This document shows positions 4,255 through 45,070 of a stretch of 64,000 nucleotides of DNA, one piece after another. The DNA is from Cyanophora paradoxa CCMP329 (lineage: Eukaryota; Plantae; Glaucophyta): NCBI GenBank assembly GCA_004431415.1, contig QPMI01000437.1, forward strand, positions 186,001-250,000, in the 5' to 3' direction. How positions within the stretch are numbered: position 1 is the first letter of the stretch; each line of letters opens with the position of its first letter. Under the pieces are notes generated by a model that saw nothing but the letters and a program-made list of their open reading frames with translations, searched no databases and was not told where the DNA came from. Both the position numbers and the translations under genes were made by a program.

Positions 4255-4377
4255 CGCGCCTCGCAGCGCCCGCGCGCTCTCCGCGGCACTGGCGACGACG
4301 GGTGCGGAAATCTGATTCAAACGAAAGGCGAGCAGGCGCTCAAGAAAATCGAGAAGACTAGGGAGGGAAGAGAAGTG

Positions 4378-6118: not shown

Positions 6119-6491
6119 CGGCGTGCCGGCGGCGCGGGGCGGGGCCCAGGCCAGCGCACCGGGACGCCTAGTGGTTCGGCGAGCTTTCGGCTGGCGTAGT
6201 ATAGTGGTCAGTATTTCTGATTGTGGCTCAGAAGACCCCGGCTCGAATCCGGGCGCCAGCACTTTTGGCCCCCAACGCGCCCCCAAGTCGCCGGCTCGAC
6301 TCGCTGCAGGCCCACTTTCCGAGTCGCCTCCATCCCTCTCAGCCATTCTGTTTCATGCGAGTTCATAGCGCGCATCGGCCCTGCCCTCCGCGCCCTCGAT
6401 TCGGACCCCGAATGCATGCGTGATCCTCATGCGAACTCGCGCTGCTCTCTGCCAGCGCAGCAGCGCGCGCGCCCCTCGAGCTCTGTCCGTT
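6119..6491. repeat. Right arm of ~370-bp inverted repeat containing tRNA-His
   Basis: Reverse complement of 3886-4254. Confidence 0.95.
6190..6261 (+). tRNA. tRNA-His(GTG)
   Basis: Identical cloverleaf to 4112-4183; TTTT at 6263-6266. Confidence 0.95.
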
Positions 6492-15800: not shown

Positions 15801-16538
15801 GAGGGGGGGCAAGAGCGGGGGGGGGGGGTACCAGGCGGGGGTCGTGGGAGGCGCGGAGGGCGGCGAGGGCGCGGCGGGCGTTCATGCGGCCCTTGATGGT
15901 TCGGAAGAGGTGCGAGCACAGGAGCCGAGCGTCGGAGAGGGTCTGGCGCGCAGGGAGGGAGGGAGGGAGGGAGGGGTACATGAGCGAGGAGCTGTGGCTC
16001 GGGGGCGGGGGCGGGGCGCACCAGCGCGAGCCGCTCGGCGAGCGCCGCGCGCCCCGCGGCAGCGGAGCGGAGCGCGTTCGCGATCCGGAGGGCCTCAGTA
16101 AGGCCCAGGACATCGTTCACCAAGGCCTCTCCGGGCGCGCCCGGCGGCAGCAGGTACGGCGGGTTGCTCTGCCGGCAGGCGTCGGCACCGGCATCGGCGG
16201 CTGGAGCGCGGGCGAGGGGAGCGCACGGGTTGCCGGACGAAAGGGCCCACGATGGGCGGTGAGTCCGGGATCTCTTGGCCATGGGCGGAGGCGCCCCCGC
16301 CGGCGGCGCCGCCGGCGGCGCCCGAGCCGCTGGAAGGCGGCCGCGGCACCTCCGACGGCTCCGCCTCCGTCTCCGGCTCCTCGGACTCGAACTCGGGTAC
16401 GCGCAGGGCCTGCGCGGCGCGCACGACGGCGTGGCCGGAGAGGAACTCGAGCCCGCGGCCGTCGCCCTGTCCAGACTCCCATGCTTCTACGTTGCTGCTA
16501 ATCTCGGGATGCGGGGGCGCAGCGGCCCACGCTTGCAT
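12840..16538 (-). CDS. Uncharacterised multi-exon helical-repeat protein, paralog A
   Basis: Exon-by-exon homology to 17409-21205 on the opposite strand, with introns diverged more than exons. Starts MQAWAAAPPHPEISS and ends ...FGNVFTEEHPRIRVRARALARDIYTYKAGIVTAAS. Frame integrity not fully verified. Confidence 0.65.
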
Positions 16539-17408
16539 TGGGTCCTAGGCCTAGGCCTGCTGCGTGGCGCCGGCGGAATACTACTTAGTAGTCGGGATGC
16601 GACGTGAGCGCGACGCGCTCGCGGTGCGGCTGCACTGCAAATGAAAGTTGAGGCTGTGCTGCCGCTGCGCATTCGCATGCGGTTCGCCGCGGCAGCACGG
16701 CCAGCAGACCAGGAATCCTGCTTCTAGGGACTGTATGATCGAGCTCTAGATCTTCCGAGCCTCTTCGGCGAAGTTCGGGGTCCGCAGCGAAGCGGTGAAT
16801 TGCAATTTGGAATTTCCCCCGGATGTCGATTCCCCGAAAGGTGGGAGCCTCTGGGAGGGTACCGACTGACGTTGAATTTGTCGTACCCGCAGTACAGTAC
16901 ATAAGAGTTCCAAGTTCGGGCAGCACTGCTGCGCAGCGAACTGTCGAGGTCGCGTCGACGGCGGCGCTGCCATCTGCATGTGCCAACGCAACGTGAACGC
17001 ATGCGCAATGGCGCCGTGAAGACGTCGACGGGTACACCCCGCGGATAAGTGAGCAGGCTGTACCCTCTCAGCTCCCGCTCGTACCCCTCTCTTCAATTGG
17101 CCGCTTCGCTCCATGGGGTTCGCCGGGCCCTCAGCTGCAGAAACGTGCGCGCGTCGACTTGCTAGTGTTGACACAAGTTGCCAGGCTTGGGCGAGACGCA
17201 GAGTAGTGCAGTAGTGCATAGCATAGAATAGATCTGACGTTGAACGGGGCGGCCCTAGGCCTGGTCTGCTGGCCGTGCTGCCGCGGCGAACCGCATGCGG
17301 ATGCGCAGCGGCAGCACAGCCTTCAGCTTCAATTGCCGTGCAGCGGCGTGAGCGCGTCGCGCGCACGCCGCATCCGGACCCGCAGCCGCACCCGTGCCGC
17401 AGGGCCCG

Positions 17409-20400: not shown

Positions 20401-21205
20401 TCTTCGCGATGGGGTTTTTTTACTAAATTGTCTACCCCGCCCCACGCTCGGACCGGCGTAACCGCAGACCAAGACGATGATCCGGACTATGAGGCCGTCG
20501 CTGCGGGTGCGCGTGCACTCTGCTGCCATACGTGCGGTCAGGGTACGAAATCTCTCCGTGTTTTGTTAGGCGGAAGTGGGGGGGGGGGGGGGGGGGGGGG
20601 CGGCAGTGCTTCTCCTTCTTCTTTATGCTATCGCTAGCTGTTAGACAGCAGCGCTTCTCCTTCGCCTTATCTTTCTTTGTGCTATCTGTTTGTCCATCTC
20701 CTTCGGACATGATCCTTCGCGCCCCGCCCGCCACCCCTCCCCGCCCCACGCCGCCCCACCCCCACCCTATCTACTCGCCCGCCTCCTTCTGATCATGACC
20801 TTTCCCTCCGCCTCTGCCAGGCGGCGGACCCGGAGGAGCGGACGCCGATGCTGGCGCACCAGCTCGTCCGCCGCGCCCTCGCCCTCCGCGACGACGGTGC
20901 GCTTCTCAAAAACAGTTGCATAAAAAAAACATATTATAAGATGGGCGATGACAGCCCGATATATATAAGATGGGCGATAAGTTGCATAACAGTTGCATAA
21001 ACATATTATAAAATGAGCGATGACAGCCAGCCCTGACCGCCCCGCCCCGCCCCGCCCCGCCTCGCCTGTAGGCAAGACCTCGCCGGCCGTCGCTCAGCTC
21101 GCGTCGGCGCTGCGGACCTACCGCACCAAGTTCGGCAACGTATTCACCGACGAGCACCCCCGCATCCGGGTGCGCGTGGCCGTGGCTAGCTACATGTACA
21201 GCTAG
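17409..21205 (+). CDS. Uncharacterised multi-exon helical-repeat protein, paralog B
   Basis: MQAWPWAAAPPQPEISS... then exons ALVNDVLGLTEALRIANAL, FEKKEEAIGHYFE, LLLARILHVHATDL, VRQEALRLLVSLDDPSLPDLDWW and ALRTYRTKFGNVFTDEHPRIRVR, each with GT/AG boundaries. Confidence 0.65.
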
Positions 21206-24200
21206 AGGCCTAGATCGGGCTTTCTGTCTAGCCTGCAATCATACCCAGGGCTGCCCGACTGACTCCGGGGGTCCGCACGCGCGGGCAGCGGCTGGAAGCG
21301 GTTCTCGCGGAGCTGCGCGCCACGGCCCCCGAGCGGCCGCCCCCGCTCGCGTGGCGCAGGCTCCTGCGCCTCCCCGTCGGCCCCGCGCGCGGCTCCTCCC
21401 AAGTCGCGCCCGAGGCCAGCGCAAGCAGCAGCAGCAACAGCAGCGGCTGAGCCAGCGGCAGCGCTGAGCGGCAGCGCGCCGGCGCCCTCACGAGGCCCCC
21501 TCGTGATCGCGCCGCCTTTTCCGCTGGCGACGTCGACGCACGCATGTATCATAGTATAGTTAAGTCAGTTGGCGGTAAGCCTCCGTGATTATAGTCTACC
21601 TATCTCTTATTCGACTAATTTGAAGTGCTAGCTTAGCTCCTTTCCCTTTTCTCTCTTTCAAATTTTGTCTTTCTTGAAAGCCGTCTTCCAGCCCGGCGGC
21701 CCGTTTGTCTCTAGAGCTGCGGCCGTCCTCGTCGCCCCAGCCCTCGAGATAGATGCCCTCATGCCTCGTCGTCGCTCGCCGAGAGTCGTACACGTGCATG
21801 TAGTCATACCGCTCTCGTGCCCTCGATCCTGTCATCATAAATGCTTTGAATGTCTTCATGATCACTATGCGCAGAAAAATCAATATGCAACGTTAACATT
21901 GATTATCTCAGTCTGCGAACAGCTTAGGGGGTATACCCTTCGATGGTACACCAGGCTTAGCCTAGTAGCGATGGACTGGGGAAGGGCTAAGTAAACATCT
22001 CCCGGGAGTCCAGCTGCAGCAACCGTGCGCGTGCATGTGCCGCGCGCGGGAATGTGCCGCGCGCGGGACATTAATTGCAAGGGGGGACGAAGACCGAAGG
22101 GCTTCTCCCAGCTTGCTTCCCGTTCCCTCGCTTCAGCCAAAAATTTTCCACGAGGCCGTTTTCGAGGGCCAGTATGCAACACCAGAAAAAAATGGTGCTT
22201 GATTCGCGTTCCGATTGGCTCGGTGGACCGGTCAGCTTTCGACTTTCGAGCGTCAAAGTCGAGCTCGCGAGAGCTCTCTCGAACTCGCGAAAAGTGGTTT
22301 TTGAGGGGAAAACCAACTTCTCTCTCACTCCGGGCTCTTCCTTGCAATTGCGCGGTTCTAGCTGCATTGCACCACTTCTCCCTAGCTGTCTCCTCTAGAT
22401 TAATATTTCGGCTTTCGCAGTGCGCCGCGTACGCCTTGCTCTTCGTCGCGCGGTTCTGCATGGAACCACTTCTCCCTAGCGCTCCTAGTGCTGGCCGCCG
22501 GGCGCACCAGCTCGTCCGCCGGGCCCTCGCCCTCCGCGACGACGGTGCGCTTGACGATGACAGCTCGATAAATATATTAGATGGGCGATAAGTTGCATAA
22601 CAGTTGCATAAACATATTATATATAAGATGCGCAATGACAGCCAGCCCTGATCATGACCGCCCCGCCCCGTCCCGCCCCGCCTCGCCTGTAGGCAAGCCC
22701 TCGCCGGCCGTCGCTCAGCTCGCGTCGGCGCTGCGGACCTACCGCACCAAGTTCGGCAACGTATTCACCGACGAGCACCCCCGCGTCCGGGTGCGCGCGG
22801 CCGTGGCTAGCTACATGTACAGCTAGAGGCCTAGATCGGGCTTTCTGTCTAGCCTGCAATCATACCCAGGGCTGCCCGACTGACTCCGGGGGTCCGCACG
22901 CGCGGGCAGCGGCTGGAAGCGGTTCTCGCGGAGCTGCGCGCCACGGCCCCCGAGCGGCCGCCCCCGCTCGCGTGGCGCAGGCTCCTGCGCCTCCCCGTCG
23001 GCCCCGCGCGCGGCTCCTCCCAAGTCGCGCCCGAGGCCAGCGCAAGCAGCAGCAGCAACAGCAGCGGCTGAGCCAGCGGCAGCGCTGAGCGGCAGCGCGC
23101 CGGCGCCCCACGAGGCCCCCTCGTGATCGCGCCGCCTTTTCCGCTGGCGACGTCGACGCACGCATGTATCATAGTATAGTTAAGTCAGTTGGCGGTAAGC
23201 CTCCGTGATTATAGTCTACCTATCTCTTATTCGACTAATTTGAAGTGCTAGCTTAGCTCCTTTCCCTTTTCTCTCTTTCAAATTTTGTCTTTCTTGAAAG
23301 CCGTCTTCCAGCCCGGCGGCCCGTTTGTCTCTAGAGCTGCGGCCGTTCTCGTCGCCCCAGCCTCGAGATAGATGCCCTCATGCCTCGTCGTCGCTCGCCG
23401 AGAGTCGTACACGTGCATGTAGTCATACCGCTCTCGTGCCCTCGATCCTGTCATCATAAATGCTTTGAATGTCTTCATGATCACTATGCGCAGAAAAATC
23501 AATATGCAACGTTAACATTGATTATCTCAGTCTGCGAACAGCTTAGGGGGTATACCCTTCGATGGTACACCAGGCTTAGCCTAGTAGCGATGGACTGGGG
23601 AAGGGCTAAGTAAACATCTCCCGGGAGTCCAGCTGCAGCAACCGTGCGCGTGCATGTGCCGCGCGCGGGAATGTGCCGCGCGCGGGACATTAATTGCAAG
23701 GGGGACGAAGACCGAAGGGCTTCTCCCAGCTTGCTTCCCGTTCCCTCGCTTCAGCCAAAAATTTTCCACGAGGCCGTTTTCGAGGGCCAGTATGCAACAC
23801 CAGAAAAAAATGGTGCTTGATTCGCGTTCCGATTGGCTCGGTGGACCGGTCAGCTTTCGACTTTCGAGCGTCAAAGTCGAGCTCGCGAGAGCTCTCTCGA
23901 ACTCGCGAAAAGTGGTTTTTGAGGGAAAAACCAACTTCTCTCTCACTCCGGGCTCTTCCTTGCAATTGCGCGGTTCTAGCTGCATTGCACCACTTCTCCC
24001 TAGCTGTCTCCTCTAGATTAATATTTCGGCTTTCGCAGTGCGCCGCGTACGCCTTGCTCTTCGTCGCGCGGTTCTGCATGGAACCACTTCTCCCTAGCGC
24101 TCCTAGTGCTGGCCGCCGGGCGCACCAGCTCGTCCGCCGGGCCCTCGCCCTCCGCGACGACGGTGCGCTTGACGATGACAGCTCGATAAATATATTAGAT

Positions 24201-25720
24201 GGGCGATAAGTTGCATAACAGTTGCATAAACATATTATATATAAGATGCGCAATGACAGCCAGCCCTGATCATGACCGCCCCGCCCCGTCCCGCCCCGCC
24301 TCGCCTGTAGGCAAGCCCTCGCCGGCCGTCGCTCAGCTCGCGTCGGCGCTGCGGACCTACCGCACCAAGTTCGGCAACGTATTCACCGACGAGCACCCCC
24401 GCGTCCGGGTGCGCGCGGCCGTGGCTAGCTACATGTACAGCTAGAGGCCTAGATCGGGCTTTCTGTCTAGCCTGCAATCATACCCAGGGCTGCCCGACTG
24501 ACTCCGGGGGTCCGCACGCGCGGGCAGCGGCTGGAAGCGGTTCTCGCGGAGCTGCGCGCCACGGCCCCCGAGCGGCCGCCCCCGCTCGCGTGGCGCAGGC
24601 TCCTGCGCCTCCCCGTCGGCCCCGCGCGCGGCTCCTCCCAAGTCGCGCCCGAGGCCAGCGCAAGCAGCAGCAGCAACAGCAGCGGCTGAGCCAGCGGCAG
24701 CGCTGAGCGGCAGCGCGCCGGCGCCCCCACGAGGCCCCCTCGTGATCGCGCCGCCTTTTCCGCTGGCGACGTCGACGCACGCATGTATCATAGTATAGTT
24801 AAGTCAGTTGGCGGTAAGCCTCCGTGATTATAGTCTACCTATCTCTTATTCGACTAATTTGAAGTGCTAGCTTAGCTCCTTTCCCTTTTCTCTCTTTCAA
24901 ATTTTGTCTTTCTTGAAAGCCGTCTTCCAGCCCGGCGGCCCGTTTGTCTCTAGAGCTGCGGCCGTTCTCGTCGCCCCAGCCTCGAGATAGATGCCCTCAT
25001 GCCTCGTCGTCGCTCGCCGAGAGTCGTACACGTGCATGTAGTCATACCGCTCTCGTGCCCTCGATCCTGTCATCATAAATGCTTTGAATGTCTTCATGAT
25101 CACTATGCGCAGAAAAATCAATATGCAACGTTAACATTGATTATCTCAGTCTGCGAACAGCTTAGGGGTATACCCTTCGATGGTACACCAGGCTTAGCCT
25201 AGTAGCGATGGACTGGGGAAGGGCTAAGTAAACATCTCCCGGGAGTCCAGCTGCAGCAACCGTGCGCGTGCATGTGCCGCGCGCGGGAATGTGCCGCGCG
25301 CGGGACATTAATTGCAAGGGGGGACGAAGACCGAAGGGCTTCTCCCAGCTTGCTTCCCGTTCCCTCGCTTCAGCCAAAAATTTTCCACGAGGCCGTTTTC
25401 GAGGGCCAGTATGCAACACCAGAAAAAAATGGTGCTTGATTCGCGTTCCGATTGGCTCGGTGGACCGGTCAGCTTTCGACTTTCGAGCGTCAAAGTCGAG
25501 CTCGCGAGAGCTCTCTCGAACTCGCGAAAAGTGGTTTTTGAGGGAAAAACCAACTTCTCTCTCACTCCGGGCTCTTCCTTGCAATTGCGCGGTTCTAGCT
25601 GCATTGCACCACTTCTCCCTAGCTGTCTCCTCTAGATTAATATTTCGGCTTTCGCAGTGCGCCGCGTACGCCTTGCTCTTCGTCGCGCGGTTCTGCATGG
25701 AACCACTTCTCCCTAGCGCT
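20853..25720 (+). repeat. Three-copy tandem array, period ~1.62 kb
   Basis: CTCGCCTGTAGGCAAG at about 21061, 22682 and 24300. Each unit holds the last two exons of paralog B, its 3' flank and the 5' ~400 bp of the Helitron-like element. Confidence 0.95.
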
Positions 25721-26783
25721 AGCTGTCTCCTCTAGATTTCCGCTTCCTCGTAGCTGCAGTGCGCCGCGTACGCCGCACGGTACCCGTGCCGCCTGGACTA
25801 CTTTTCACTGCATCAAGCTTGCACCGCAGCACCGCCTACCGAGCACGCGCCGCTGCCCGCAGCCGAGCACGCTGCGCGGCACTCGTGCTTGAGCTTAAAG
25901 CTTGCACCGCAAAACCGCTTGCGCCGCTGCCTAGCTGCACCGCTGATCGCAGCCGAGCACGCCCGGCCGCGGGCCGTCCAGACCGTGCTCTCTTGCTGCG
26001 TTCAGTACGTCTCCGAAATCGAGTTTATACCGCAGATCCGCGTGCGCCGTCGCTTCGTCGTTCGCTTTGTCGGGTGCGCGCAGTTTGATTGAAGTGGACC
26101 GCCCACAGCTGACGTCTGTTCATGATGCAGGCCTGCGATCGAGGACCTCCACGACTCGGCGAGGGGGTCGTCGAGCGCCTGCGCGACGCCGGCCTCGCGG
26201 ACATCGAAATTCAAGACCTTGTCTACCAGATACGCGGCGGGAGCGAGCAGCGCGCCAGCCGCGCCGCTCTGCGGGCGCTCGAGGCGGCCGGCCGCCTCAC
26301 CATGCTCTTGCAAGACGGCGTTCTTCAGGACCGGCGCCGCTGGCTGCCGCTCACCCCCAAAGTCGACTTCCGCCCCGATCCCCTCCAGAACTTCGGAAGG
26401 CCTGGATCGACTACGTCTACGGCGAGCCCTCTGCAGACAGCACCATCATCTTTTAGCCAGCTGTTCAGGGTTAGCGGTAGGCCGTGCGAAGAGAGTTGAT
26501 GCGGAGCGTTTTTTGGCTCCAGAACAATCTTTCATATAGTGTGCGCTGAGTCTGTCCTTTCATTTACTATTTTTTTATTCGATTTCATCGCAGCGTGTTC
26601 TCATCGGGCCTTTTCTATTTTTCCAATCAATCTGTGTTAATCTTTAACCTTCGACCTGCCGCGCGCACTGGGCCGGGGTCGTTCTGCCGCGCGCATGTGC
26701 GCGCCACTAGGACTCTTTCATTAGATCCCGGTTCCCCCCTTGCCCCCCCGGCGCGAAAATCGCGGCCGGGCACCTAGTAATAT
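25313..26783 (+). mobile_element. Non-autonomous Helitron2/Helentron-like element, long copy with cargo
   Basis: 5' T|TGCAAGGGGGG, 3' subterminal CCCCCCTTGC, then GC hairpin CCCGGCGCGAAAATCGCGGCCGGG and CACCTAGTAATAT. No TSD. A paralogous empty site (GACATTGTCGAAC) is seen near 39629. Confidence 0.7.
26130..26460 (+). pseudogene. Coding-like cargo fragment inside the Helitron-like element
   Basis: Reads ACDRGPPRLGEGVVERLRDAGLADIEIQDLVYQIRGG...RRWLPL and ELRKAWIDYVYGEP. Absent from the 38174 copy. Confidence 0.4.
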
Positions 26784-29155: not shown

Positions 29156-29212
29156 CCCGATCGCGAGTCTCAACTTCAAGGCTTGGCAATCTTTCCCGTG
29201 GTGGCCCCCGAA

Positions 29213-30658
29213 CCTTGCTCCGCAGAGTCTAGAAAGCGCCCTCGCACGCTGCCTGAACCTTGCACCCCGGTACGCGGCACGCGCAGCTAAACGCGTTCGG
29301 CAGACGCTTCTGGAGCGGGCCCGACGCCTCTGGTCACGTCGCTGCGAAATCAACGCGGAGTGGGAACGCGACTGCCGCGTCTCCCAGGCCTCAAAGAAGC
29401 GACCGCGCCCGCCCCGCACGGGCGCCCGCGCCCGAGAGCGGGCCCGCGGCCCCCGGACCTGTACATGTAAGGAAGTCTGCGCCGCCTGCGACGGGCCGAT
29501 TCGCCTTCACAATCTACTCAACGCCGCTCGGAACGCAGACTGCCCACCGGAGTACGCGGGCTGGAAGGCGGCGCTCCGCGCCCAAGAGCTCTACGATTGC
29601 GTCAAGGTACGCCCTTGGGAGTCACATCCTAGCCCGCTCTAAACGGTACCCCGAGTCGCGCGAAAGGGGGGGGGGGGGGGGGGGCTACGTCGGGAGGAGA
29701 CTCTCGACACCACCTACCTACTACTTCACCATACCTAGTCCTCGAGAAACTTCCCTGCTCTACTCTTAGCCTCGCACACACTAGATATAGCCGCCCCGTC
29801 CGACTCGCTGGGCCCCGCCCAAGCGAGCGCCTGCCTTGCCTCCCTCTCCCGTTCTGCCCTCCTGCTCGCTCTCTTGGCCCTGCCTCCCACTCACGACCTC
29901 GCCAACGCTCCTCGCGCCTCGACAGGGAGGGAACGATGGACCGGAAGGCTTGGCGGAAGGCTTCGGCTGGTCGTTGCACCCACCAGATACCCCGGTCATC
30001 GTGCCAGGACCGTGGGTTGAAGGACCGCCGCGGAGGGGGGCTCGCAATTGCCCGCGGCGGGGGTGCGGCGGCTGGTTCGAGGCTGGAAGCCCTGCTGACC
30101 GAGAAATCCGACCCTCCCCCTCCCCGCCACGGCCGGCGCCGACCTTCTCCGTCCCGCCCCACTTCTTCCCCGCAACGTCCCCCCTCGCCTCATTCCCCTC
30201 GGCCCCTCTACGCCGACGTGCTTCCACCCGCGCTTCGGGCGAGCGGCCCCCTCAACGCAGAGCCCGCCGCGCTAGCTGTAGTCGCGGCCGCGTCGAGAGT
30301 AGGCAGATTAGACCGCGGGTCCGTCCTGGCTTTCCTACCGTACAGTAGAACAGCCCGCGAGCTCCGGACGTCCCGACGGTCCCTAGGCAGGCAGCACTAG
30401 CAGGCAGCACTCGTAGACCCCTGGGTAGTCCTCTCTGTAGCCTAGTCCTAAGCTAGGCTAGATGTATAGGTAGTAGCTCTCTGCTCTGGGTTAGCTTTGC
30501 TTTAGTTTACGTCTCCTTGACTAGCTCCACCCTGTCCGATGGCTGATAGGTTCCCTACCCGGCGTAACCAGTAGGCTCATCTTTCGACTTGACACTTTAC
30601 GGACACTTCAGTTCTATCATTAGCCGTATTGTCTCGGTGTGTGCGAATTCATTGACTT
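29213..30658 (+). mobile_element. 5'-truncated non-LTR retrotransposon (LINE-like), copy A
   Basis: 17-bp TSD CCGTGGTGGCCCCCGAA (29196-29212 / 30659-30675). An ATG-less open frame at 29214-29642 contains LLERARRLWSRRCEINAEWER and CTCKEVCAAC. A ~1-kb 3' UTR ends GTGTGTGCGAATTCATT. Confidence 0.8.
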
Positions 30659-31859
30659 CCGTGGTGGCCCCCGAATCCCCCTTCCCTTTCCCTTCCCCGT
30701 AGTTAAATCCCCTTCCCCGGGCCCAACTGACGCGCACGGCAAGTCAGTGGCCCTTCATAAAAATTCATTTCTGCGTGTCAATTTCTTTCGCTATGTCCGA
30801 CGGTCATCAGTAAGTGGGGGGGGGGGGGGGGGGGGGGGGGGGTGGTGCGCATGCGGTGGGGCTCGCCACCTGCTTGTACTCCTACTACGATCGCGACACG
30901 TGCCGGTGATGCATGCGTGGCGCAATTGGCACGGTACCGGTCAGGCTCGAAGAAGGAACGTGCAGATCTCGAGCGCTCGACCCAAAGGAGCCGCTGAGCG
31001 GGCCTTTGGGCGCCCGACTCGGCGAAGGTGCTCGTGCCCGATCGCGACTCTCAAGGTGCACGTGCCAAGGTGAGTCCGACAGTCCTACAGCCACAGATCT
31101 AGAGCTCAATGTGGAAGACGTCGACACGGCAACCTCAAAATTACTCTTAAACTCGAGCTCGCGATCGCGATCGGCCGCGCGCGGGTCCCATGCATATGGC
31201 CATCTCCACGACATGCATAAGTACTATAGCCATCTCTACGACATGCATCAGTACTATAGCTAGTGACCGTGCACGTTAGCGTAGCATGAGCTTGAGGATT
31301 AAAAATATTGCGTTCAACGGTTCCTTCCGAAGTTCGTTTCGATTCTTTTCGGAGCATGAATTCGAAGATACGCGTACGTGTATACAAGACGGACGGCACC
31401 GAAGGTCTGAGCCTTCGGGATCGTCCTCTACAGAGGGGAAATCATAATCGGGACCCATGTGCATTTCGATTCTGCGGCGAGTCGCACTGCGGCAATTAGC
31501 TATAGAACAACTACTTGCAATTGACGCTACTACTTGCAGTTGACATTGCGCACCGTGCACGTGTATACGTGAATAAAAGCGGCTCACGCATCCTCGACGT
31601 AGAGAGTGACCTGGCCGGCCTCGGCAGCGATGTCGGCGAGCTCCGCGTCAGTGTCGGCGTCGATGTCATCGTCGGCGAACAAGAACCCGTTCATCTCCTC
31701 CTCTGACATGGCCTGCTCGCGATCGCATCGGAATTCGAAATCAGGTGCGCATGCGAGTCATTCACATGGATGCGATATATCTTGATTGCGACCGGCTAGC
31801 TGTAGCCACAGCAAGCCGCTGAGATTCTAGATCTGCACCTGGGTCTCCGAGTCCAGCAG
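30659..31859. repeat. Left arm of ~1.2-kb inverted repeat
   Basis: Reverse complement of 36974-38160. The arm continues at 29182-29212 beyond the LINE insertion. Confidence 0.95.
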
Positions 31860-32620
31860 CTGAATTTGTTCAATCTTGAACTTGACGTACCTGAGACAAT
31901 TCAATGATTTGAACGATGAACAAGTTGCTCAAGATTTACAAATGTAAACGAAGACGTACGAATCGTTGTCCTGAAAATTCATGCATTTGTATCAGGGAGA
32001 TCGTCAATCGCGAGCTGTGAAGGCCCCGGGGCCCTCAGGGTGCGCACCGAGCCTGTCAGGTTTTCGCACTTTTGCGACAACAACCCTGCACGTGTGTTTT
32101 CAAGAGCCTTGGTTATCCCGTCCTCGCAAGCCGTCCAGATATCCTCCACCGTCTGGTTGCCCCGACCATCAACTATGGTGCGTTTGCCGACGTAGGCAGG
32201 TTTGCAAAGAGCTGCGGAATCGGCGGATCCGGATCAGACGACAGCTTGCACGCATGATGACGGCGGGCGCTAACGCACTGATTTTGTCCTTCGCGCCTGC
32301 ACAGAAGGAGCTCACGTTTTTCTTGAGAGAATCGCTGAGATCGGTCCATCCCTTCTCCTGATCCTGGTAAAACTCCATCGTCCCTTTTTGCTGCGCGCGC
32401 TGACTGAACAAGAGTCCCACGCGCCGACTGAACAAGAAAAGTTGGGATAACTCACGTCGGCATCCGTGTAGAATCTGGCGGAGGTCATTCGTGAAAACTC
32501 TGGGGCATTGGCACCCGTATTCAGACACTGAGATGCTGCTCACATGCAGTGCGCGGCACTGCGCGCGGCAGCGCTAGCCGCGGCCGCGCTGGCGCTGATC
32601 ATGAACGGCTTTTCTGCGCG
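31276..32620 (-). CDS. Cys-rich beta/gamma-crystallin-like protein with acidic tail, gene L (5' end unresolved)
   Basis: Spliced CRALH-FSRMTSARFYTDAD-QKGTMEFYQDQEKGWTDLSDSLKKNVSSFCA-LCKP...TACEDG...KCENLTGS-DND(11-nt exon)-SYVKFKIEQIQLLDSETQ-AMSEEEMNGFLFADDDIDAD... Intron phases match gene R. Confidence 0.6.
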
Positions 32621-32789
32621 CACCTTCAAGAATGACAAGCTGCTCAGCTGCAGTCCGGCCACGATATATATCGATCGACTTCCAACGATCCGATGATCCG
32701 GCCCGTTACTAACTTACTCGGTGACTAGGACTCTCCGAGGCTCAGCGCTAGCACTGCGACAGTGCGACTCGGCGAGTCTGCGACTACTA

Positions 32790-33042
32790 CCGTAATGTAT
32801 TTTATACATGCGCGCATGCGCACTTTATTAATGCGGCACCAAATTAATGCGTTTTCCGCTGGCAAAACGCATTAATTTGGTACCGCATTAATATCGAAAC
32901 GCTAAGAAAACTGCGCTATGTACCCCCTAACGCAATCAAAAGGCTTCAAAACGCATTAATTTGAGACCGCATTATTATCTGTACTAGGGGTCCGGGTCCA
33001 AAAACGCATTAATATCTGGCGCATTAATTAAGTGCATTACGG
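32790..33042. mobile_element. MITE, Tc1/mariner-pogo (Tc2-like) type
   Basis: TA|CCGTAATG...CATTACGG|TA, with internal repeated AAACGCATTAAT motifs in both orientations. Confidence 0.85.
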
Positions 33043-33342
33043 TAGGCTACTAGTAGCCTACTACGGACTACCGGTCGACCTCACGGGCCCACAGAGTCCT
33101 AGTAGTCTCCTACAGAGTCCTACTGCATGCTAGCTGCCGCGGCAGTGCCGGCGTGTCACAGACTCACAGTGTGCGGCCCCCGGCCCTATACCGCCGGCTA
33201 CCGGTACTACGGTAGCCGCTCTGCAGCGTGCAGGCCGCACTGTCACAGTGTGCACTGTGCACAGTGTGCAGTACTACTACAACGCTAGTACTACGGTACT
33301 GTACCGTGTGGCACTATAATACCGCGCCCACTTAATTACCTA

Positions 33343-33622
33343 TCGTAGAACACAACATTAATTTATAAGGTCTGTACTTTATTATGTCGTCCCGAAATTA
33401 TGTCGCCTCGGACGGGACAAAACGACATAATTTGGGGACGTCATAATACGGGCTCGCTAAGCCGCCCCATACAGACTGATGATACAGTACCCCCAATTTT
33501 ACCGCCCCATACAAGCCTGAAAATTTCATGCCGACATAATTTGGGGATGTCATATTTCGCATAGAGAAGGCTCGGGTTTTCAAACGACATAAATTTGCAT
33601 GACATAATATTGTGTTCTACGG
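33343..33622. mobile_element. MITE, TA-target
   Basis: TA|TCGTAGAACACAACATTA...TAATATTGTGTTCTACGG|TA, with internal GACATAA repeats. Related to 35212-35510. Confidence 0.85.
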
Positions 33623-33991
33623 TAATACTAGTAACTAGTATACGTACTACGGTACGTTACCGTACGTACTGGTACCTAGCTACTACCCCCGGTAGGTTAG
33701 CGGCCGGGCGTAGCACTAGTAAACTATGATAGTAGCTGCGCTACCGCCGCAGCCTACCGGTAGCGCTGAGTCGCGCTGACTCAGTGAGCTGCTGATCATG
33801 AGGGGCCGTGGCCCGTGAGGGCTGATTTTCGTCGACGACTGGCGGGGCCCAATCGGCCGGATTAAAAACAATTCTGGGTCGACCTCAGGGGTGGAGCCTG
33901 AGTCTGCCTGGCTGAACCCAGCACTATCCGGCGTATCCGCCAGTGGACCCGGTGACCGCCACTGGACCGCCAGCCGGCGCCAGGTATCCTT

Positions 33992-34182
33992 GAGTCGCCG
34001 TCGACTCGGCGTCGAGTCTGCGACTCGGCGCCGAGCCGCCGACTCGGCGGCGCGCCGGCCGGCGTCGAGTCGCCGTCGACTCGCCGTCGAGTCGCCGTCG
34101 ACTCGCCGACGAGTCGCCCGGCCGACGACTCGCCGTCAGACTCGCCGAGTCGCCGACTCGCCGTCGAGTCGCCGACGATGAC
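33992..34182. repeat. CpG-rich palindromic array of GAGTCGCCGTCGACTC-like units
   Basis: Repeated GTCGACTCG/CGAGTCGCC words in both orientations. Confidence 0.85.
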
Positions 34183-34870
34183 TCTCGATCGATCGATTGC
34201 AAAAAAGCAGGAAGTACCTATAAAAAAACAGGAAGTACCTGTCCAAAAAATACATCGATATCGTGGCAATGATGGCAGAGCTATATAAGTCGCGACTCGC
34301 GAGTCGCCAACTAAATATTTCTACCAGGCTAGTTCAACGGTTCTACATGTACACTCAGTGACCGGACTGGGACAGTTTTACTAGTATACGGACCTTTATT
34401 AAACGGTACCGTAGTACGAGCCTACGAGTCTACGACTCTTAGGCCGCCCCCCGCGGCCGGGCTCGTAGCCTCGTACCGTATATATACTGAGCATGGAAAC
34501 TGTGACATCGATGAGCATCATGGCATGCGCACATCGAGGGCAGCTTACTAAGAGCCTAGTAAGAGGTGATGGTAGGCTACTAGTACTACTTAACGCGAAG
34601 TAGTACTGGTGTTCGAAAAGTCACACTGAGTGCGCCATATGCATGCATATGCTGCAGGCTGCAGCCTGCAGGCTGCAGCTGCAGCCTGCAGGCCCTGAGG
34701 CTGCAGCCTGCAGGCTGGCACTGCGCGGCAGAGGCTGCCGCAGTGCAGCTGGCCGCGCCGCGGCCGCCGCGCGGCCGGCGCCGGCGGCGCGGCGCCGGCG
34801 CCGGCGCCGGGCTGGCCAGGCCTGGCCGATCGCGACGACGGCGACAAGTGTTGGCCACTGGCCAGTACTA

Positions 34871-35100
34871 CCGTGTAATACTTATTTACTGCGCCACAAA
34901 TTACTGCATTCCAAAAGTTCTGCGCCGGTAGGCGCTTTACTGCGCTACCAAATTACTGCGTTCCATCGGCCTCGAAAATCTATTATTTGTTAGCAAAGGG
35001 GGTAATACTGCGCTACCAAATTACTGCGTTCTAAAAACTTTGAGCGCAGTAATATGGTAGCGCAGTAGTTATGTCAGCGCGGTAATTATGTATTACACGG
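34871..35100. mobile_element. MITE, TA-target
   Basis: TA|CCGTGTAATAC...GTATTACACGG|TA, with internal TACTGCGCTACCAAATTACTGCG repeats. Confidence 0.9.
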
Positions 35101-35211
35101 TAGTGGCCACTGGCCACTGGCCAGTGGCCACTCAGTGAGTAGTACTATGTGACTAGTACTTAGTAGTACTACGGTACTGGGCCACTAGTACCGCTGGCAT
35201 GGGCAGTACTT

Positions 35212-35510
35212 CCGTATAACACAATAATATGACCGGCGCTTTACTATGTCGGTACCAAATTATCATATATAGTATGTCGGTTCGGACATGATCTAACGAC
35301 ATAACCGCCCATATGCATACAATTAACCGCCCCATACAAGCCTGAAAATTTCATGACGACATAATTTGGGACCGTCATATTTCACCAAGAGAAGGGTCAA
35401 GTTTTATAACTGGAGTAGACTAGAGGCTGTGGCCGGTAATTCACCCAAAAAAAAAGTTTTATAACGACATAAATCTGTCCGACGGTCAGCCATATTTTTG
35501 TGTTACACGG
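35212..35510. mobile_element. MITE, TA-target
   Basis: CCGTATAACACAA...TTGTGTTACACGG|TA. Shares CCATACAAGCCTGAAAATTTCATG with 33343-33622. Confidence 0.8.
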
Positions 35511-35512
35511 TA

Positions 35513-35746
35513 CTGTAACACAAGTATATGTTTTAAATTGCCGTATATATTGCCGAGAGGCCGAATTCGGCAATTTTAAGCCACGGCAATTTTTAGGGGG
35601 TAGAGCTAAACGGCCGCTTTTGTATGGCGTCATAGAAGAAATCCAGAGTTGCGGCAATTTATCGCCACGGCAATTCCGGTTTTGGTCGAATTCGGCAATT
35701 TAACTACGCGGCAATTCAAGCATTCCTACAGTATTCTGTCTTACGG
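35513..35746. mobile_element. Probable MITE abutting the previous one
   Basis: TA|CTGTAACACAA...TCTGTCTTACGG|TA with imperfect TIRs and internal CGGCAATT repeats. Confidence 0.55.
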
Positions 35747-36185
35747 TATATGTACGAGTCAGTGTGACTACCGTACCGTAGTACTACCGTACTGTCTTAC
35801 TGGTACTAGTAGTACTAGTCCGATTCACCGTGGCACGATTCACGACTCACCGTGCCACGGTGGCACGCCGCACGAGCCACGACTCATCGAAATCATGCAT
35901 GGGATGATCACGAGACTCACGAGTCACGACTCGGCGGGTCCAATATCATAGCCTAGTAGTATCGTAGTGGCTAGTGACCAGTCTGCGGCACCGGTAGCTG
36001 CAGCCTTCACAGCAGGCGGGTCAGCTGCAGCCGCTGAGCTTTCAACGGCAGGTGCGCACATGTATATGCGTGCGCTGACATCGGAAGCTTAAGAAACCTG
36101 CGCCGAGCCTTAAAGTCGCTGATCATGACATCGATGCGCAACTTGTGCTGACGGGTGCCTGCATTTCTGCGCGCACAGCTGCAGG

Positions 36186-37563
36186 TCCAGGATGGCTCAA
36201 TATGCGCTCCAAAACCCGGAAAACTATGTGCGGGACGTCCTATACACCTACCAGGGGGGAGCTGTCATGAAGCCCAAATACGACGCCAAATGTGTTAATG
36301 ACGTAACGAACAACAACGCGCTATCTGTAGTCCAATTTTTCGAGAAGGCCGACGTGAGTCGAGTTTTCGTTTGTCGCCGTTAACGTTGCAGCCCGCTTGA
36401 CAGGGCGCAGTGCCAGGGAAAGTATTTCGACGTAACCACTGGGTCAAGTCCACATGGCAAGTGGTGGACGCTCCCCAACATAATGAAGACCTCTCTCTCA
36501 AGCATGTGCTTCGAATATAGTACCACGGAATCAATAGGTGCGTTCTCCCGAACTTGTTTCAGAGACGTCTGGTTCGCGTATGCTAATGCTAGCGCTGTTG
36601 CGCAGAGCTCTGCAAGCCAAAGACACTGCCAAACGGGACGAAAACATCATGCGAGAATGGCTACATTCTGAAACTCACCAATGCCCCACACCAGCCAAAC
36701 AAGTTGATTGATACCTGCTGGGAACTGTCGAAAGGATTCGTGAGCTTCCCAATATATATATATATTCATGATCAATTACAGTTGCCTTGATACACTGCTT
36801 CTTCCCGCTCGTTTTCTCCGCAGTTCAACGACTAGTGCGTGTGTGATTCTCTCAGAATTCGAATCTCTCCCCGCAGTTCAATGACAAGATCTAGATCTGA
36901 ATATACATTAATCTGCATGCATATGCGCAGCGGCTTCGAGAAGTACAAGCTGAACGAAGCAAGTACTGCCTTACTGCTGGACTCGGAGACCCAGGTGCGC
37001 ATGCAGATCTAGAATCTCAGCGGCTTGCTGTGGCTACAGCTAGCCGGTCGCAATCAAGATATATCGCATCCATGTGAATGACTCGCATGCGCACCTGATT
37101 TCGAATTCCGATGCGATCACGAGCAGGCCATGTCAGAGGAGGAGATGAACGGGTTCTTGTTCGCCGACGATGACATCGACGCCGACACTGACGCGGAGCT
37201 CGCCGACATCGCTGCCGAGGCCGGCCAGGTCACTCTCTACGTCGAGGATGCGTGAGCCGCTTTTATTCACGTATACACGTGCACGGTGCGCAATGTCAAC
37301 TGCAAGTAGTAGCGTCAATTGCAAGTAGTTGTTCTATAGCTAATTGCCGCAGTGCGACTCGCCGCAGAATCGAAATGCACATGGGTCCCGATTATGATTT
37401 CCCCTCTGTAGAGGACGATCCCGAAGGCTCAGACCTTCGGTGCCGTCCGTCTTGTATACACGTACGCGTATCTTCGAATTCATGCTCCGAAAAGAATCGA
37501 AACGAACTTCGGAAGGAACCGTTGAACGCAATATTTTTAATCCTCAAGCTCATGCTACGCTGA
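36186..37563 (+). CDS. Cys-rich beta/gamma-crystallin-like protein with acidic tail, gene R (5' end unresolved)
   Basis: Spliced ...KCVNDVTNNNALSVVQFFEKAD-CQGKYFDVTTGSSPHGKWWTLPNIMKTSLSSMCF...-ELCKP...TSCENG...TCWELSKGF-FND(11-nt exon)-YGFEKYKLNEASTALLLDSETQ-AMSEEEM..., open throughout. Confidence 0.65.
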
Positions 37564-38172
37564 CGTGCACGGTCACTAGCTATAGTACTGATGCATGTCG
37601 TAGAGATGGCTATAGTACTTATGCATGTCGTGGAGATGGCCATATGCATGGGACCCGCGCGCGGCCGATCGCGATCGCGAGCTCGAGTTTAAAGAGTGAT
37701 TTTGAGGTTGCCGTGTCGTTTCCACATTGAGATCTAGATCTGTGGCTGTAGGACTGTCGGACTCACCTTGAGACTCGCGATCGGGCACGAGCGCCTTCGC
37801 CGAGTCGGGCGCCCAAAGGCCCGCTCAGCGGCTCCTTCGGGTCGAGCGCTTGAGATCTGCACGTTCGAATTCCTTATTCGCGATCGAGCCTGACCATGCC
37901 GATTGCGAGACGCATGCATCACCGGCACGTGTCGCGATCGTAGTAGGAGTACAAGCAGGTGGCGAGCCCCCCCCGCATGCGCACCCCCCCACTTACTGAT
38001 GACCGTCGGACATAGCGAAAGAAATTGACACGCAGAAATGAATTTTTATGAAGGGCCACTGACTTGCCACTGACTTGCCGTGCGCGTCAGTTGGGCCCGG
38101 GGAAGGGAATTTAACTACGGGGAAGGGAAAGGGAAGGGCGATTCGGGGGCCACCACGGGAAAGATTGCCAAG
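36974..38172. repeat. Right arm of ~1.2-kb inverted repeat
   Basis: Reverse complement of 30659-31859 plus 29182-29212. It ends at the Helitron-like insertion. Confidence 0.95.
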
Positions 38173-38173
38173 T

Positions 38174-38929
38174 TGCAAGGGGGGAAAGAAGACCGAAGGG
38201 CTTCTCCCAGCTTGCTTCCCGTTCCTTCGCTTCAGCCAAAATTTTTCTAGGAGGCCGTTTTCGAGGGCCAGTCTGCAACAAAAATGTTTTTTATTCGCGT
38301 TCCGATTGGCTTGGTGGATCGGTCAGCTCTCGACTTTCGAGCGTCAAACTCGAGCTCGCGAGAGCTCTTTCGACTCGGGAAAAGTGGTTTTCGAGGGGAA
38401 AACCAACTTCTCTCTCACTCCGCATGGAACCACTTCTCCCTAGCTGTCTCCTCTAGATTAATATTTCGGCTTCGTCGACGTCGCAGTGCGCCGCGTACGC
38501 CGCACGGTACCCGTGCCGCCTGGACTACTTTTCACTGCATCGATATCAAGCTTGCACCGCAGCACCGCCTACCAAGCACGCGCCGCTGCCCGCAGCCGAG
38601 CACGCTGCCCGGCACTCGTGCTTGAGCTTGCACCGCAAAACCGCTTGCGTCGCTGCCTAGCTGCACCGCTGATCGCAGCCGAGCACGCCCGGCCGTCCAG
38701 ACCGTGCTCTCTTGCTGCGCTCAGCACGCCGCCGAAATCGAGCTTATACCGCAGAACCGCGTGCGCCGCTGCCCGCAGCCGAGCACGCCGGCCGGGCCGG
38801 GCGCTCTTGTTGCGCGCGACCCCGAGGGGAGGACTCTGCGCATGTGCATGCCACTAGGACTCTTTCATTAGATCCCGGTCCCCCCCTTGCACCCCCGGCG
38901 CGAAAATCGCGGCCGGGCCACTAGTAATA
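38174..38929 (+). mobile_element. Non-autonomous Helitron2/Helentron-like element, internally deleted copy
   Basis: T|TGCAAGGGGGG...CCCCCCCTTGCA, same hairpin, then CACTAGTAATAT. Colinear with 25313-26783 minus the cargo. Confidence 0.7.
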
Positions 38930-39014
38930 TCGATCTCGCGACCCTCGGTGCACGCGTACCTGGCCGAAGCGGAAAGGCCGCGGCGGCGCAATCGCGAGGC
39001 CGGCGGCCGCGGCG

Positions 39015-39665: not shown

Positions 39666-40388
39666 AATTATCGGATATAAATGAATTCGCAAATACAACT
39701 GAGGTGTCCATCTGTGTCAAGTCGAGAGATGAACCTACGGGACTAAGCCTTTCGGCCATCGGACCGGGTGGAGCTCGGATGTGGAAATAGCTGGAGAGAC
39801 TACCCCGGGGACTAGGTCTAGCGCTGCAGAGAAAGGAAGATCCTACGTGGGAAGAGAGTCACTACCCAAGGACGAGGAGGAAGCAGAGGTCTGGAGGACG
39901 AAGCGAGCTGCAGCTGGGACTATGCCTAGTTAGCTATAGCCTCCGGGAAGGCGCTCTATAATCTAAACCACTCTGTACACGCTAGTATACGGCCCGCCGT
40001 GTCGCCAGCACGGCGGGTGCGGGTCTGGCCATGGGGGCTCGCTCGTCCAAGAGCGGGCCTGGAGGAGCCGCCGGGCTCAAGGATTCGGGGGGTGTTGACC
40101 GGGGAGGAGGGGGAGGCAGGGGGTACGGGACGGGAGGGCGAGGGGCAGCAGTGGACAGTGGGAGGGGGAGAGGACCGGTACCGGGTCGGGCAACCGCGGT
40201 CGGGAGTATAGGGAGGTTCCAGTGGCGCATTCCGCCGGGCCGGGTTTCCAGCCGCCTGCCGACCGCCTCCCCCCCGCCGCGGGCAATGACGAGCCCCCCC
40301 CCGCAGCGGTCTGTCCGCCCCGGCCTGGCGCGTGGCCGGGGCAGGAGCAGGCAGGCTCGGCGGCCGACAGACGACCTTCCACCCGGAA
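39666..40388 (-). mobile_element. 5'-truncated LINE-like copy B (3' UTR only)
   Basis: 14-bp TSD ACGTTAGCTCTTAT (39652-39665 / 40389-40402). Same 3' end GCGAATTCATT on the minus strand. Confidence 0.85.
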
Positions 40389-42605: not shown

Positions 42606-45070
42606 TTAGGGGGACCCGGTCCCGGACGGGCCGGATCCGGAAGGGGCGGGGCCCGGGCCCGGGGCGGGGGCGGGGGCGGGGCGGGCGGGGCGGGCGAGGC
42701 GCTGGACGGCGTCGAGGAGGAGCTCCCGCCGGACAGGCTTCAGGATGTAATCTGTGCACGGCGCCCGGGCCGTCAGTCAGCCAGCCGTCAGTCAGGCGAG
42801 GGGCGGATCCGGACGAGCGAGGGGCGCAGCGAGCTCTAGAGCAGCACCATCATCTTGTGAGGGTTCTCATACATTTATGTATCTTTTTATGCTCTCATGT
42901 CGGTGGCTAGAGCTTTTGGTTCTTTTTACATCTAGAGCGGTCTAGATCTTGAGTTCTAGATCTTGGTTCTCTTCTAGGTCTAGAGCGGCCTCGGCGGGGC
43001 TGGGCATGGCGGGGCGGGGCGGGGCGGGGCGGGGGGCACCGTCGGCGCCGAGGCTGAAGCACTGCTCGGCGGCCCCCGAGATGGCGTTCGCCGTCTGCGC
43101 GGCCGGGCGGGGGTGAGTGGGGGGGGGGGCAGATTGTTGTGTCCTTATAATCTTGGACGGGGCGGGGCGGGGGGGGGCAGGGCAGGGCGGCTCGGACCAT
43201 GAAGACGATGGGGATGCGGCGGCGGGGCCGCGCCCCCGCCCCCGCCCCCGCCTCCGCTCCAGCCCCCGCCTCGGCCTCCAGCTCCCGAATCTTCCGCGTC
43301 GCCTCCCGCCCGTCCATCTGACAGGCCGATGTCAGCTTCGATTCACCGGGAACTTTATTAATCTTTAGCTTCGATTTAGATCCCTCAATCTTTAGATCCC
43401 TCTATCTTTAGATCCCTCTATCTTTAGATCCCTCTATCTTTAGATCCCTCTATCTTTAGATCCCTCTATCTTTAGATCCCTCTATCTTTAGATCCCTCTA
43501 TCTTTAGATCCCTCTATCTTTAGATCCCTCTATCTTTAGATCCCTCTATCTTTAGATCCCTCAATCTTTAGATCCCTCAATCTTTAGATCCCTCAATCTT
43601 AGATTTAGATTCACCAGGGACTTTAGAGCCCTCAGCTCCTTTTATCTTAGATGTACGGGCATCTCTCGCCCATCCATCTGATACGCAAGGCCCCTTGGCA
43701 CCCTCTATCTTAGATTTGCTAGGTCCCTTAGGTCCTTTTATCTTTGATTCTCCTAGGGCGCACGAGCGCTATTAAATGAATTCGCACACACCGAGACAAA
43801 TGGCTAGAGATATAGCTGAGGTGTCCATCTGTGTCAAGTCGAGAGATGAACCTACGGGACTAAGCCTTTCGGACATCGGACCGGGTGGAGCTCGGATATG
43901 GACGTAACTGGAAACGCTACCCCGGGGACTAAGTCTAGATCTAGAGCTGCAGCACAGGAAGGATCCTACGCGGGAAGGGAAGTGACTACCCAGGGACGAG
44001 AATAGAAATCAGAGGTGGGCAGCAAAGTGAGCTGCAGCTGTAGCTAGCGCTATGCCTAGTAAGCTAGGGCCTCCGAGAGGGCGCACTATAATCTGAACCA
44101 CTCTGTACACGCTAGAGAACGGCCCGCCGTGTCGTCGGCACGGCGGGTCGGGTCGGGGGCTCGCTCGTCCGAGAGCAAGCCTGGTGGAGCCGCCAGGCTC
44201 AGAGCATTCGGGGAAGATTGGTCGGGGGGAAGGGGGACGGGGCAGGGAGGGGGGCACGGCATGGAGCGACGTTGGGCGGTGGGAAAGGACGGGGGAGGAC
44301 CGGGTCGGGCAGCCGCGGTCGGGAGGAGGGAGGCTCCAGTGGCGCGTTCCGCCGGGCTTCCAGCCGCCCGCCGACCGCCTCCCCCCCACCGCGGGCAGTG
44401 ACGAGCCCCCTCCGCGGCGGTCCGGCCGCCCCGGCCTGGCGCGTGGCCGGGGCAGGCGCCGGTGGGTTCAGCGGCCGACCGACGACCTTCCACCTGGCAG
44501 CCCGCACCACCGTCCCCTCCCTGGGGTAGCGGGAGATCAGCAGAGCAGAAGGGGCGGAGGGGGTGGGGGATGGGGCCGTGGGGGAGGGCGACTGGGGCAA
44601 CTGGCGAGAGAGGGCAGGGGGGGAGAGAGCAGCGGTGGCGGCGGGAGGCGAGCGTGTCGGCGGTAGTGAGGGGGGTGTGGAGGCGCAGGTCGCGCAGGCG
44701 ACGGCGGGTCGGCGGCGGGCGCGAGGGCCCGGCGAGCGGCCGTAGGTGATAGGTTGAGAGTGAGGTCGTCAGTGGGCGTAGCGATGGAGTCCTAGGGCGC
44801 ACGAGGGGCATCTCTTGGTCCATGAGGACGAGGCCGAAGGCGGCGGGGTCGGCGGCGTAGGCGCGCACGCCCTCCAGCCCGTTGCCCGCCACTGTGACTT
44901 TGTGGCCCGCCGCCTCCAGCATCTTCCGCGCCACCAGCACGCTGCGGTCATGATCGGTGAGTTCATGATATGATCACCGAGTTCAGTGATCAGGATCGTC
45001 GTGGGGCGCACTTGGTGGCGTTGTCCTCGACGAGGAGGCCTAGGATTGAGACGGGCTCGCGGGTGCTAGA
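42606..45070 (-). CDS. Duplicated receiver (REC) domain exons; possible stand-alone response regulator or pseudogene
   Basis: Copy of the kinase 3' end: [40 protein letters not shown]...[24 protein letters not shown]...GAD-DYILKP. TAA at 42606; the indels seen are in frame. Confidence 0.7.
43375..43600. repeat. 16-bp minisatellite (GATCCCTCTATCTTTA)n
   Basis: About 14 units here versus about 5 at the paralogous intron 46838-46915. Confidence 0.95.
43767..44789 (-). mobile_element. 5'-truncated LINE-like copy C at an exon/intron edge of the REC duplicate
   Basis: 16-bp TSD TCCTAGGGCGCACGAG (43751-43766 / 44790-44805). Absent from the paralogous kinase intron. Same 3' end. Confidence 0.9.

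Follow-up and report, generated by a model that had tools for sequence, protein, structure and literature searches.

A pair of divergent six-exon genes is encoded in the 64,000-nt window of the Cyanophora paradoxa genome analysed here, the window being the whole stretch of contig QPMI01000437.1 under study. Gene A (31584..32488, minus strand) specifies 166 aa as modelled, with coding exons at 32456-32488, 32279-32390, 32048-32211, 31960-31970, 31839-31890 and 31584-31712, the last including the stop codon; its frame is open throughout. Gene B (36192..37255, plus strand) specifies 208 aa as modelled, with coding exons at 36192-36353, 36411-36537, 36606-36739, 36824-36834, 36931-36994 and 37127-37255, again with the stop in the last. 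Every junction of both models is GT..AG, and all five introns (5/5) occupy homologous positions with phases 0, 1, 0, 2, 0, which bears out the shared splice structure described in an earlier, sequence-only reading of this DNA. The fourth exon of each model is an 11-nt micro-exon, also proposed in that reading, and is required for exons 5 and 6 to stay in frame. The micro-exon of gene A is the sole AG..GT candidate that restores the frame; that of gene B is one of four such candidates, has the same length as its counterpart and encodes xNDx. The two start codons are separated by a 3.7-kb spacer of unique sequence (32489..36191) with short foldback (MITE-like) units and simple repeats, in which no ORF has a family match. 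Each gene has a separate promoter side and a full exon set. The predicted protein carries four conserved cysteines and an acidic C-terminal tail, and the paired motifs named earlier were all recovered in A and B (RFYTDAD/QFFEKAD, VSSFC/LSSMC, LCKP and TACEDG/TSCENG). Gene A lacks the first ~43 residues of B, and an in-frame TGA 18 codons before its ATG makes its 5' end uncertain. Given these two features, and its absence from the public annotation, gene A may be decaying. We infer that both genes are expressed.

The public annotation of gene B consists of a 66-aa fragment, tig00020660_g12546, and the corresponding EukProt protein (tig00020660_g12546.t1, P0002) joins exons 5 and 6 exactly as in our model. 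This intron-5 junction is the sole junction of either gene that is present in public gene models. Word searches with stop-free genomic stretches, in which scoring was confined to exon 2 of either gene, were blank for both, and therefore no annotated protein of 52-217 aa contains those exons. The missing and truncated annotations are likely the result of a gene predictor defeated by the 11-nt micro-exon. A third member of the family, g12562 (P0004), lies outside the window, is 88% identical and is likewise annotated as a 66-aa fragment, in which a B-type exon 5 is joined to the same tail with differences from B at 6 of 42 exon-6 residues. No encoding contig is on record for P0002 or P0004. A search of the whole library with exon 6 matched only P0002 and a pair of long bacterial repeat proteins (P0001 and P0003); the matches of the latter two were taken as compositional, with many short acidic repeats summing to a score.

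The upstream parts of the two genes (the heads) differ strongly. No DNA similarity was found between the 5' halves of A and B, in agreement with the initial impression that they could not be aligned by eye. At the protein level, the heads share 27% identity (E 1e-5; z 8.9 with 2000 shuffles), and this score and the five shared introns establish that A and B are homologous over their whole length, beyond the identical part. Since the heads are saturated at this level of identity and A and B agree in position and phase at all five introns, the duplication that produced A and B is old.

The downstream parts belong to an inverted repeat, in which positions 30659-31859 align with 38158-36974 over 1226 columns at 92.7% identity, and 29182-29212 is the reverse complement of 38142-38172. 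The arms were delimited with blastn and MAFFT and confirm the inverted repeat of the earlier reading. Arm A (29182..31859, made of 29182-29212 and 30659-31859) is interrupted by an insertion and contains the 3' part of exon 5, intron 5, exon 6 and ~1 kb of DNA downstream of gene A; arm B (36974..38172) is uninterrupted. The inner border of the repeat falls within exon 5, at CTGCTGGACTCGGAGACCCAG, at homologous in-frame positions of A and B, and the outer border is sharp at 29182/38172. Two layers can be distinguished within the arms. The inner core, at 31147..31837 in arm A and 37002..37692 in arm B, holds 2 substitutions in 691 nt (0.3%), one in the 3' flank (31277/37562) and one in intron 5 (31720/37119), and a 6-nt indel adjoins the intron-5 donor at the core edge. 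The outer layer holds 28 differences in 448 aligned nt (6.3%) and six indels, and the contrast between the layers is highly significant (2/691 versus 28/448; Fisher p = 4.7e-10). Intron 5 and ~440 nt of 3' flank match as closely as the exon. Thus, the near identity that had been claimed from mid-exon 5 outward, introns included, holds for the inner core, although this core is not the 100% match it was thought to be and the outer arm is only ~94% identical, with indels.

The insertion in arm A (29213..30658; 1,446 nt) lies between two exact direct copies of a 17-mer, CCGTGGTGGCCCCCGAA (29196 and 30659), which occurs once in arm B (38142, reverse complement). It is a mobile element that arrived later than the repeat and generated a 17-nt target duplication. 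Its 3' end matches repeats at 39693-40383 and 43775-44494, and other inverted and tandem duplications are present in the window. The entire 9-kb unit was also considered as a transposon with long terminal inverted repeats and was rejected, since there is no target duplication at 29182/38172, there is no transposase, and the heads are homologous. Note that 34.7 Mb of duplicate features have been reported in the C. paradoxa genome (PMC6704402).

The protein encoded by A and B remains an orphan after exon-by-exon searches. It had been likened to beta/gamma-crystallin folds. The signature of these Greek-key domains, Y/F-x4-F/Y-x-G ... S, is present twice per domain. Both proteins share with it a stretch of the form [FY]-x5-x-G ... 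W ... [VL]SS[FM]C, in one copy (Y-TDAD-Q-K-G in A and F-EKAD-C-Q-G in B, then SS), but Q or C stands in place of the second aromatic residue and no second Greek key is visible. Pfam Crystall and PDB gave no match for any exon at E up to 10, in searches where intron 1 splits the motif and exons span just 37-54 aa. Searches of Pfam, PHROGs, NCBIfam and PADLOC with individual exons returned noise only, PDB sequence profiles of exons 2 and 3 contained no crystallin and nothing credible, and the Atlas had no usable match for B exon 2 or A exon 3. The crystallin likeness, based on one partial motif, gained no support from these exon-by-exon searches. The AlphaFold2 model of P0002 was uninformative (pLDDT 53). 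A resemblance of the tail to S100P, the only match in the S100/EF-hand test, weakened from E 0.03 to E 0.2 with a two-sequence profile, found nothing in Pfam, and was set aside; A is 3 residues shorter than B in the aligned loop. The segment EEEMNGFLFADDD resembles the end of the ribosomal P-stalk, and this identity was discarded when the PDB search yielded no stalk protein at E up to 10. Viral scans found nothing, and a metagenome scan produced one 20-residue, pattern-driven match on a contig without a convincing ORF, which was dismissed.

Gene conversion between the arms, one of the mechanisms suggested in the sequence-only reading, provides the best account of the common 3' region. Identity spans intron 5, exon 6 and the 3' flank alike and switches abruptly within exon 5, which indicates copying at the DNA level, of coding and noncoding sequence together, and from this pattern we infer conversion as the mechanism. 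We consider it probable that partial intrachromosomal conversion occurred at least twice between old inverted paralogues, as a by-product rather than as a device that generates diversity. In this scenario, A and B are old head-to-head paralogues of a small orphan protein. An older tract would have extended from mid-exon 5 to ~1.2 kb outward and would now be ~6% diverged; a transposon would later have struck this tract in arm A; and a recent tract would have re-homogenised the inner ~700 nt, now 0.3% diverged. The near identity of the arms would then be a by-product of recombination repair between inverted duplicates. In exon 6, where A and B are identical and the 66-aa fragment of g12562 serves as outgroup with 6 of 42 residues different, the converted part appears younger than the split of the two genes. 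The same fragment suggests a direction: its differences imply that the tail is old in the B lineage, and the tail of A equals that of B exactly, so that B was probably the donor and A the recipient. No leftover second tail was detected in the window with tblastn.

An alternative origin for the common region is a one-off chimeric duplication, in which non-homologous repair placed an inverted 1.2-kb copy of the 3' end of B within A (exon capture), conversion acting only in the later homogenisation of the core. The sharp outer border of the arms at 29182/38172 and the many rearrangements of the region fit such an event. However, the inner junction occupies equivalent in-frame sites of exon 5 in the two genes, which also keep the same intron-5 donor, an outcome that is automatic under homologous exchange and a matter of luck under random insertion, and no displaced original tail of A was found downstream. 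We therefore regard exon capture as unlikely. The near identity of the core could also be an artefact of assembly or polishing, in which short reads across two similar repeats flattened real differences. The PacBio assembly was indeed corrected with Illumina reads (PMC6704402), and the ~700-nt repeats exceed the read length. Two substitutions and a 6-nt indel nevertheless persist in the core or at its edge, the flanks are unique on both sides of each arm, the outer layer retains its 6% divergence with indels, and neither the arms nor the common exon structure could arise from such an artefact. We hold this explanation to be very improbable.

Two further readings give the common tail a function. 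The sequence-only reading envisaged a dedicated system of variable heads and a constant tail, with arms kept for inversion or directed conversion to diversify a recognition, adhesion or toxin protein. In its favour, near-perfect 691-nt inverted stretches that lie 5.1 kb from each other might allow inversion, strongly diverged heads contrast with identical tails, and the contig carries a third member whose tail is of this type. However, the two genes are already complete and divergent, and exon 6 and the part of exon 5 within the repeat do not differ between the arms in coding sequence. Inversion would thus return every head to an equivalent tail and leave both proteins as they were, which deprives it of any role in generating diversity. 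The repeat has just two heads beside it and the window contains no silent cassettes, noncoding DNA matches as well as the exon, and neither a recombinase nor any family match occurs nearby (no recombinase-like family among a limited sample of ORFs searched). In the whole-library search, the only cluster with this tail was the one that contains the gene B fragment. Diversification is thus an extremely unlikely explanation of the locus. In the other reading, A, B, g12562 and perhaps more members constitute a glaucophyte-specific family with cysteine-bearing heads free to diverge and an acidic tail kept uniform by selected conversion; a uniform tail would be under selection if, for example, all members docked to one common partner. 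Judged from three sequences, selection on the tail seems quite improbable, and the observation that intron 5 and the 3' flank match as closely as the exon argues for neutral copying instead.

Among known systems, invertible-segment switches, such as bacterial shufflons and the Hin/Gin-type switches of tail fibres, also have a segment bracketed by inverted repeats and coding sequence that runs across the repeat edge. Those switches couple a single fixed promoter or constant gene part with alternative variable ends, whereas A and B have their own promoter sides, the swapped parts are identical and a flip is silent. The locus is closer to the gene-conversion mosaics of inverted paralogues (as in the concerted evolution of palindromic pairs), with which it shares duplicates a few kb apart, a switch from saturated to near-identical sequence that ignores exon/intron borders, and nested tracts of different ages. 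It differs from these mosaics in that conversion is limited to the final one and a half exons plus downstream DNA, in that A and B are small unannotated orphans, and in the later transposon insertion in one arm.

For the curation of the C. paradoxa genome, these results identify two, and probably three or more, genes that are absent from public annotation or cut to 66-aa fragments. If gene conversion is the correct reading, the locus offers a clean, datable case of nested conversion tracts between inverted paralogues, and illustrates how an apparent layout of variable and constant parts can arise without diversifying machinery.

Two divergently oriented genes, A and B, occupy positions 29182-38172 and are separated by a spacer of 3.7 kb. 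We generated gene models by reading three reading frames and then checking each splice junction. Gene A (minus strand) encodes 166 amino acids in six coding exons (32456-32488, 32279-32390, 32048-32211, 31960-31970, 31839-31890 and 31584-31712), and gene B (plus strand) encodes 208 amino acids, also in six (36192-36353, 36411-36537, 36606-36739, 36824-36834, 36931-36994 and 37127-37255). All 10 introns are of the GT..AG class and measure 57-132 nt, lengths that fit the mean of 86 bp published for introns of the Cyanophora paradoxa genome (PMC6704402). The five introns of each gene cut the two proteins at homologous residues, in phases 0, 1, 0, 2 and 0; at all five, the junctions agree with the sequence-only reading, which had proposed two divergent spliced genes with common intron positions and phases. 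The 11-nt micro-exons it had placed in both genes are needed, since splicing exon 3 directly to exon 5 in A or B shifts the frame and forfeits the acidic tail. The proposed micro-exon of gene A is the sole AG..GT candidate that restores the frame; that of gene B is one of four such candidates, and it alone matches its counterpart in length, distance from exon 3 and xNDx coding. Intron 4 of gene B also carries a second copy of the micro-exon acceptor and first bases (ccgcag followed by TTCAATGAC, 36871-36887), a dead local duplicate, as no donor lies 11 nt on.

A whole-library search with exon 6 recovered a 66-aa EukProt entry (EP00741 tig00020660_g12546.t1) that is 100% identical over 42 exon-6 residues. 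This entry is gene B exon 5 read from an ATG within intron 4, and its junction with exon 6 is precisely the modelled one; the public model of gene B is therefore a truncated fragment. Neither gene A nor the head (the diverged 5' part) of either gene turned up in public annotation in the exon-6 library search or in word searches. A word search with the fragment revealed a third family member, g12562, on the same contig and outside the window; it is 88% identical to the B fragment, with a B-type exon 5 and 6 of 42 exon-6 residues changed. Joined exon models were used only locally, for the comparison of A with B and for a scan of the 64-kb window, which yielded no further family copies.

Upstream of LLDSETQ, the start of the shared part in mid-exon 5, blastn detected no DNA similarity between A and B, and the N-terminal DNA is indeed as non-alignable as first described. 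The head proteins are 27% identical (E 1e-5); their local alignment scores 71, against 28 ± 4.8 for shuffled sequences, and none of 2000 shuffles reached that value. Four cysteines and the short motifs previously listed as common to both genes are conserved in A and B. This alignment and these conserved residues argue for an old duplication and not for unrelated heads. GC3 values are lower in the heads (0.63-0.66) than in the shared tail (0.88). Upstream of the gene A start codon (32489-32600, minus strand), the frame remains open for 17 codons and holds a B-like stretch (QCLNT versus KCVND); four codons beyond that stretch comes an in-frame TGA, before which lies a short ORF in the same frame (MISASAAAASAAARSAAHCM). 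Gene A could be decaying or a pseudogene, could be truncated at its 5' end, or could use another 5' exon.

Exon-by-exon database searches of A and B gave no credible match in Pfam, PHROGs, NCBIfam, PADLOC, PDB profiles, the Atlas, or viral and metagenome sets. The suggested likeness to beta/gamma-crystallins gained no support: the stretch in question carries just one, incomplete signature, interrupted by intron 1, with Q (A) or C (B) at the second aromatic position, and the exon-wise searches were blank. We consider a crystallin-type Greek key rather unlikely. Gene B has no obvious signal peptide, and a single-sequence fold of its 66-aa fragment was uninformative (pLDDT 53). A weak match of the tail to S100P (E 0.03) was taken as chance, since it weakened with a profile (E 0.2) and lacked Pfam support. 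Two long bacterial surface-repeat proteins, P0001 and P0003, contain 9-13 repeats each (...GFITSPDDADADASNEIQDL...) with 38-39% identity to residues 8-38 of the tail; the relationship was judged compositional, though the match per repeat is fairly regular.

The tails lie in inverted-repeat arms (30659-31859 / 38158-36974, with 29182-29212 the reverse complement of 38142-38172) that consist of two layers. The inner layer (31147-31837 / 37002-37692) takes in exon 6, the bulk of intron 5 and ~440 nt of 3'-flanking DNA and shows 2 differences in 691 nt, whereas the outer layer shows 28 differences plus six indels over 448 aligned nt (Fisher p = 4.7e-10 for the contrast). The near-identity first described from mid-exon outward, introns included, holds for the inner layer and drops to about 94% in the outer one. 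A 6-nt indel between the arms adjoins the intron-5 donor. The best-kept block of the outer arm (30739-30810 / 38067-37996) is identical at 50/50 positions and terminates in ATGTCCGACGGTCATCA, with GTAAGT next; it may represent the first exon of a small gene that converges on A (and B) and was duplicated with the arms.

The identity tract begins at homologous in-frame positions within an exon, affects intron, exon and flank equally, and sits inside the older, more diverged tract, while the genes to either side are ancient paralogues. From this pattern, which ignores exon, intron and flank borders, we infer intrachromosomal gene conversion between inverted duplicates, at least twice, in support of the conversion proposed earlier. 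Genes B and g12562 have a B-type exon 5 and tail in common but show a 14% difference in exon 6, where A and B are equal; the simplest history would thus be that the 3' end of B overwrote that of A. The sequence-only reading had also offered inversion between the arms, as might suit a diversification system. Were the arms to cross over, 31860-36973 would be inverted; both junctions would fall in identical sequence, however, leaving proteins A and B unchanged, so that such a flip cannot create diversity. The original observation stands with corrections, whereas a diversification or inversion system is not supported.

An insertion of 1,446 nt (29213-30658) is present only in arm A, flanked by a perfect 17-nt target-site duplication (CCGTGGTGGCCCCCGAA) of a sequence that is single-copy in arm B. 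The insertion is a mobile element and postdates the older event in the arms. Its end (...GTGTGTGCGAATTCATT) recurs at 43775, and related repeats lie at 39693-40383 and 43775-44494; with the insertion they probably make up a non-LTR-type family that is represented at least three times in the window.

Other repeats were also observed. The spacer holds several units of 240-290 nt (32787-33045, 33341-33624 and 34867-35104) that carry terminal inverted repeats of 20-28 nt as well as short palindromic repeats in their interior and resemble MITEs or foldback elements. Four copies of the 11-mer GCTGATCATGA are present (19313, 32594, 33791 and 36118, all plus strand; 0.03 expected), with no alignment between flanks; two of these sit close upstream of the A and B start codons and have opposite orientations with respect to the genes. 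A 1.6-kb unit forms three tandem copies (20946-25720, 98-99% identity), and a partial copy (~87-90%) begins at the first base past arm B (38173-38930), further pieces of which match 25692-26783. A second, larger inverted duplication (12504-16713 versus 21532-17260), whose pieces are 76-91% identical, has its centre near 17 kb, and its long ORFs gave no Pfam match. Finally, a 387-nt inverted repeat (3886-4264 versus 6491-6105, 97.9% identity) contains two tRNA genes (4112-4183, minus; 6190-6261, plus).

The C. paradoxa genome is reported to contain 34.7 Mb of duplicate features (PMC6704402). The evolution of the A/B pair is of an ordinary type, and the value of the locus is modest, chiefly for the curation of gene models.
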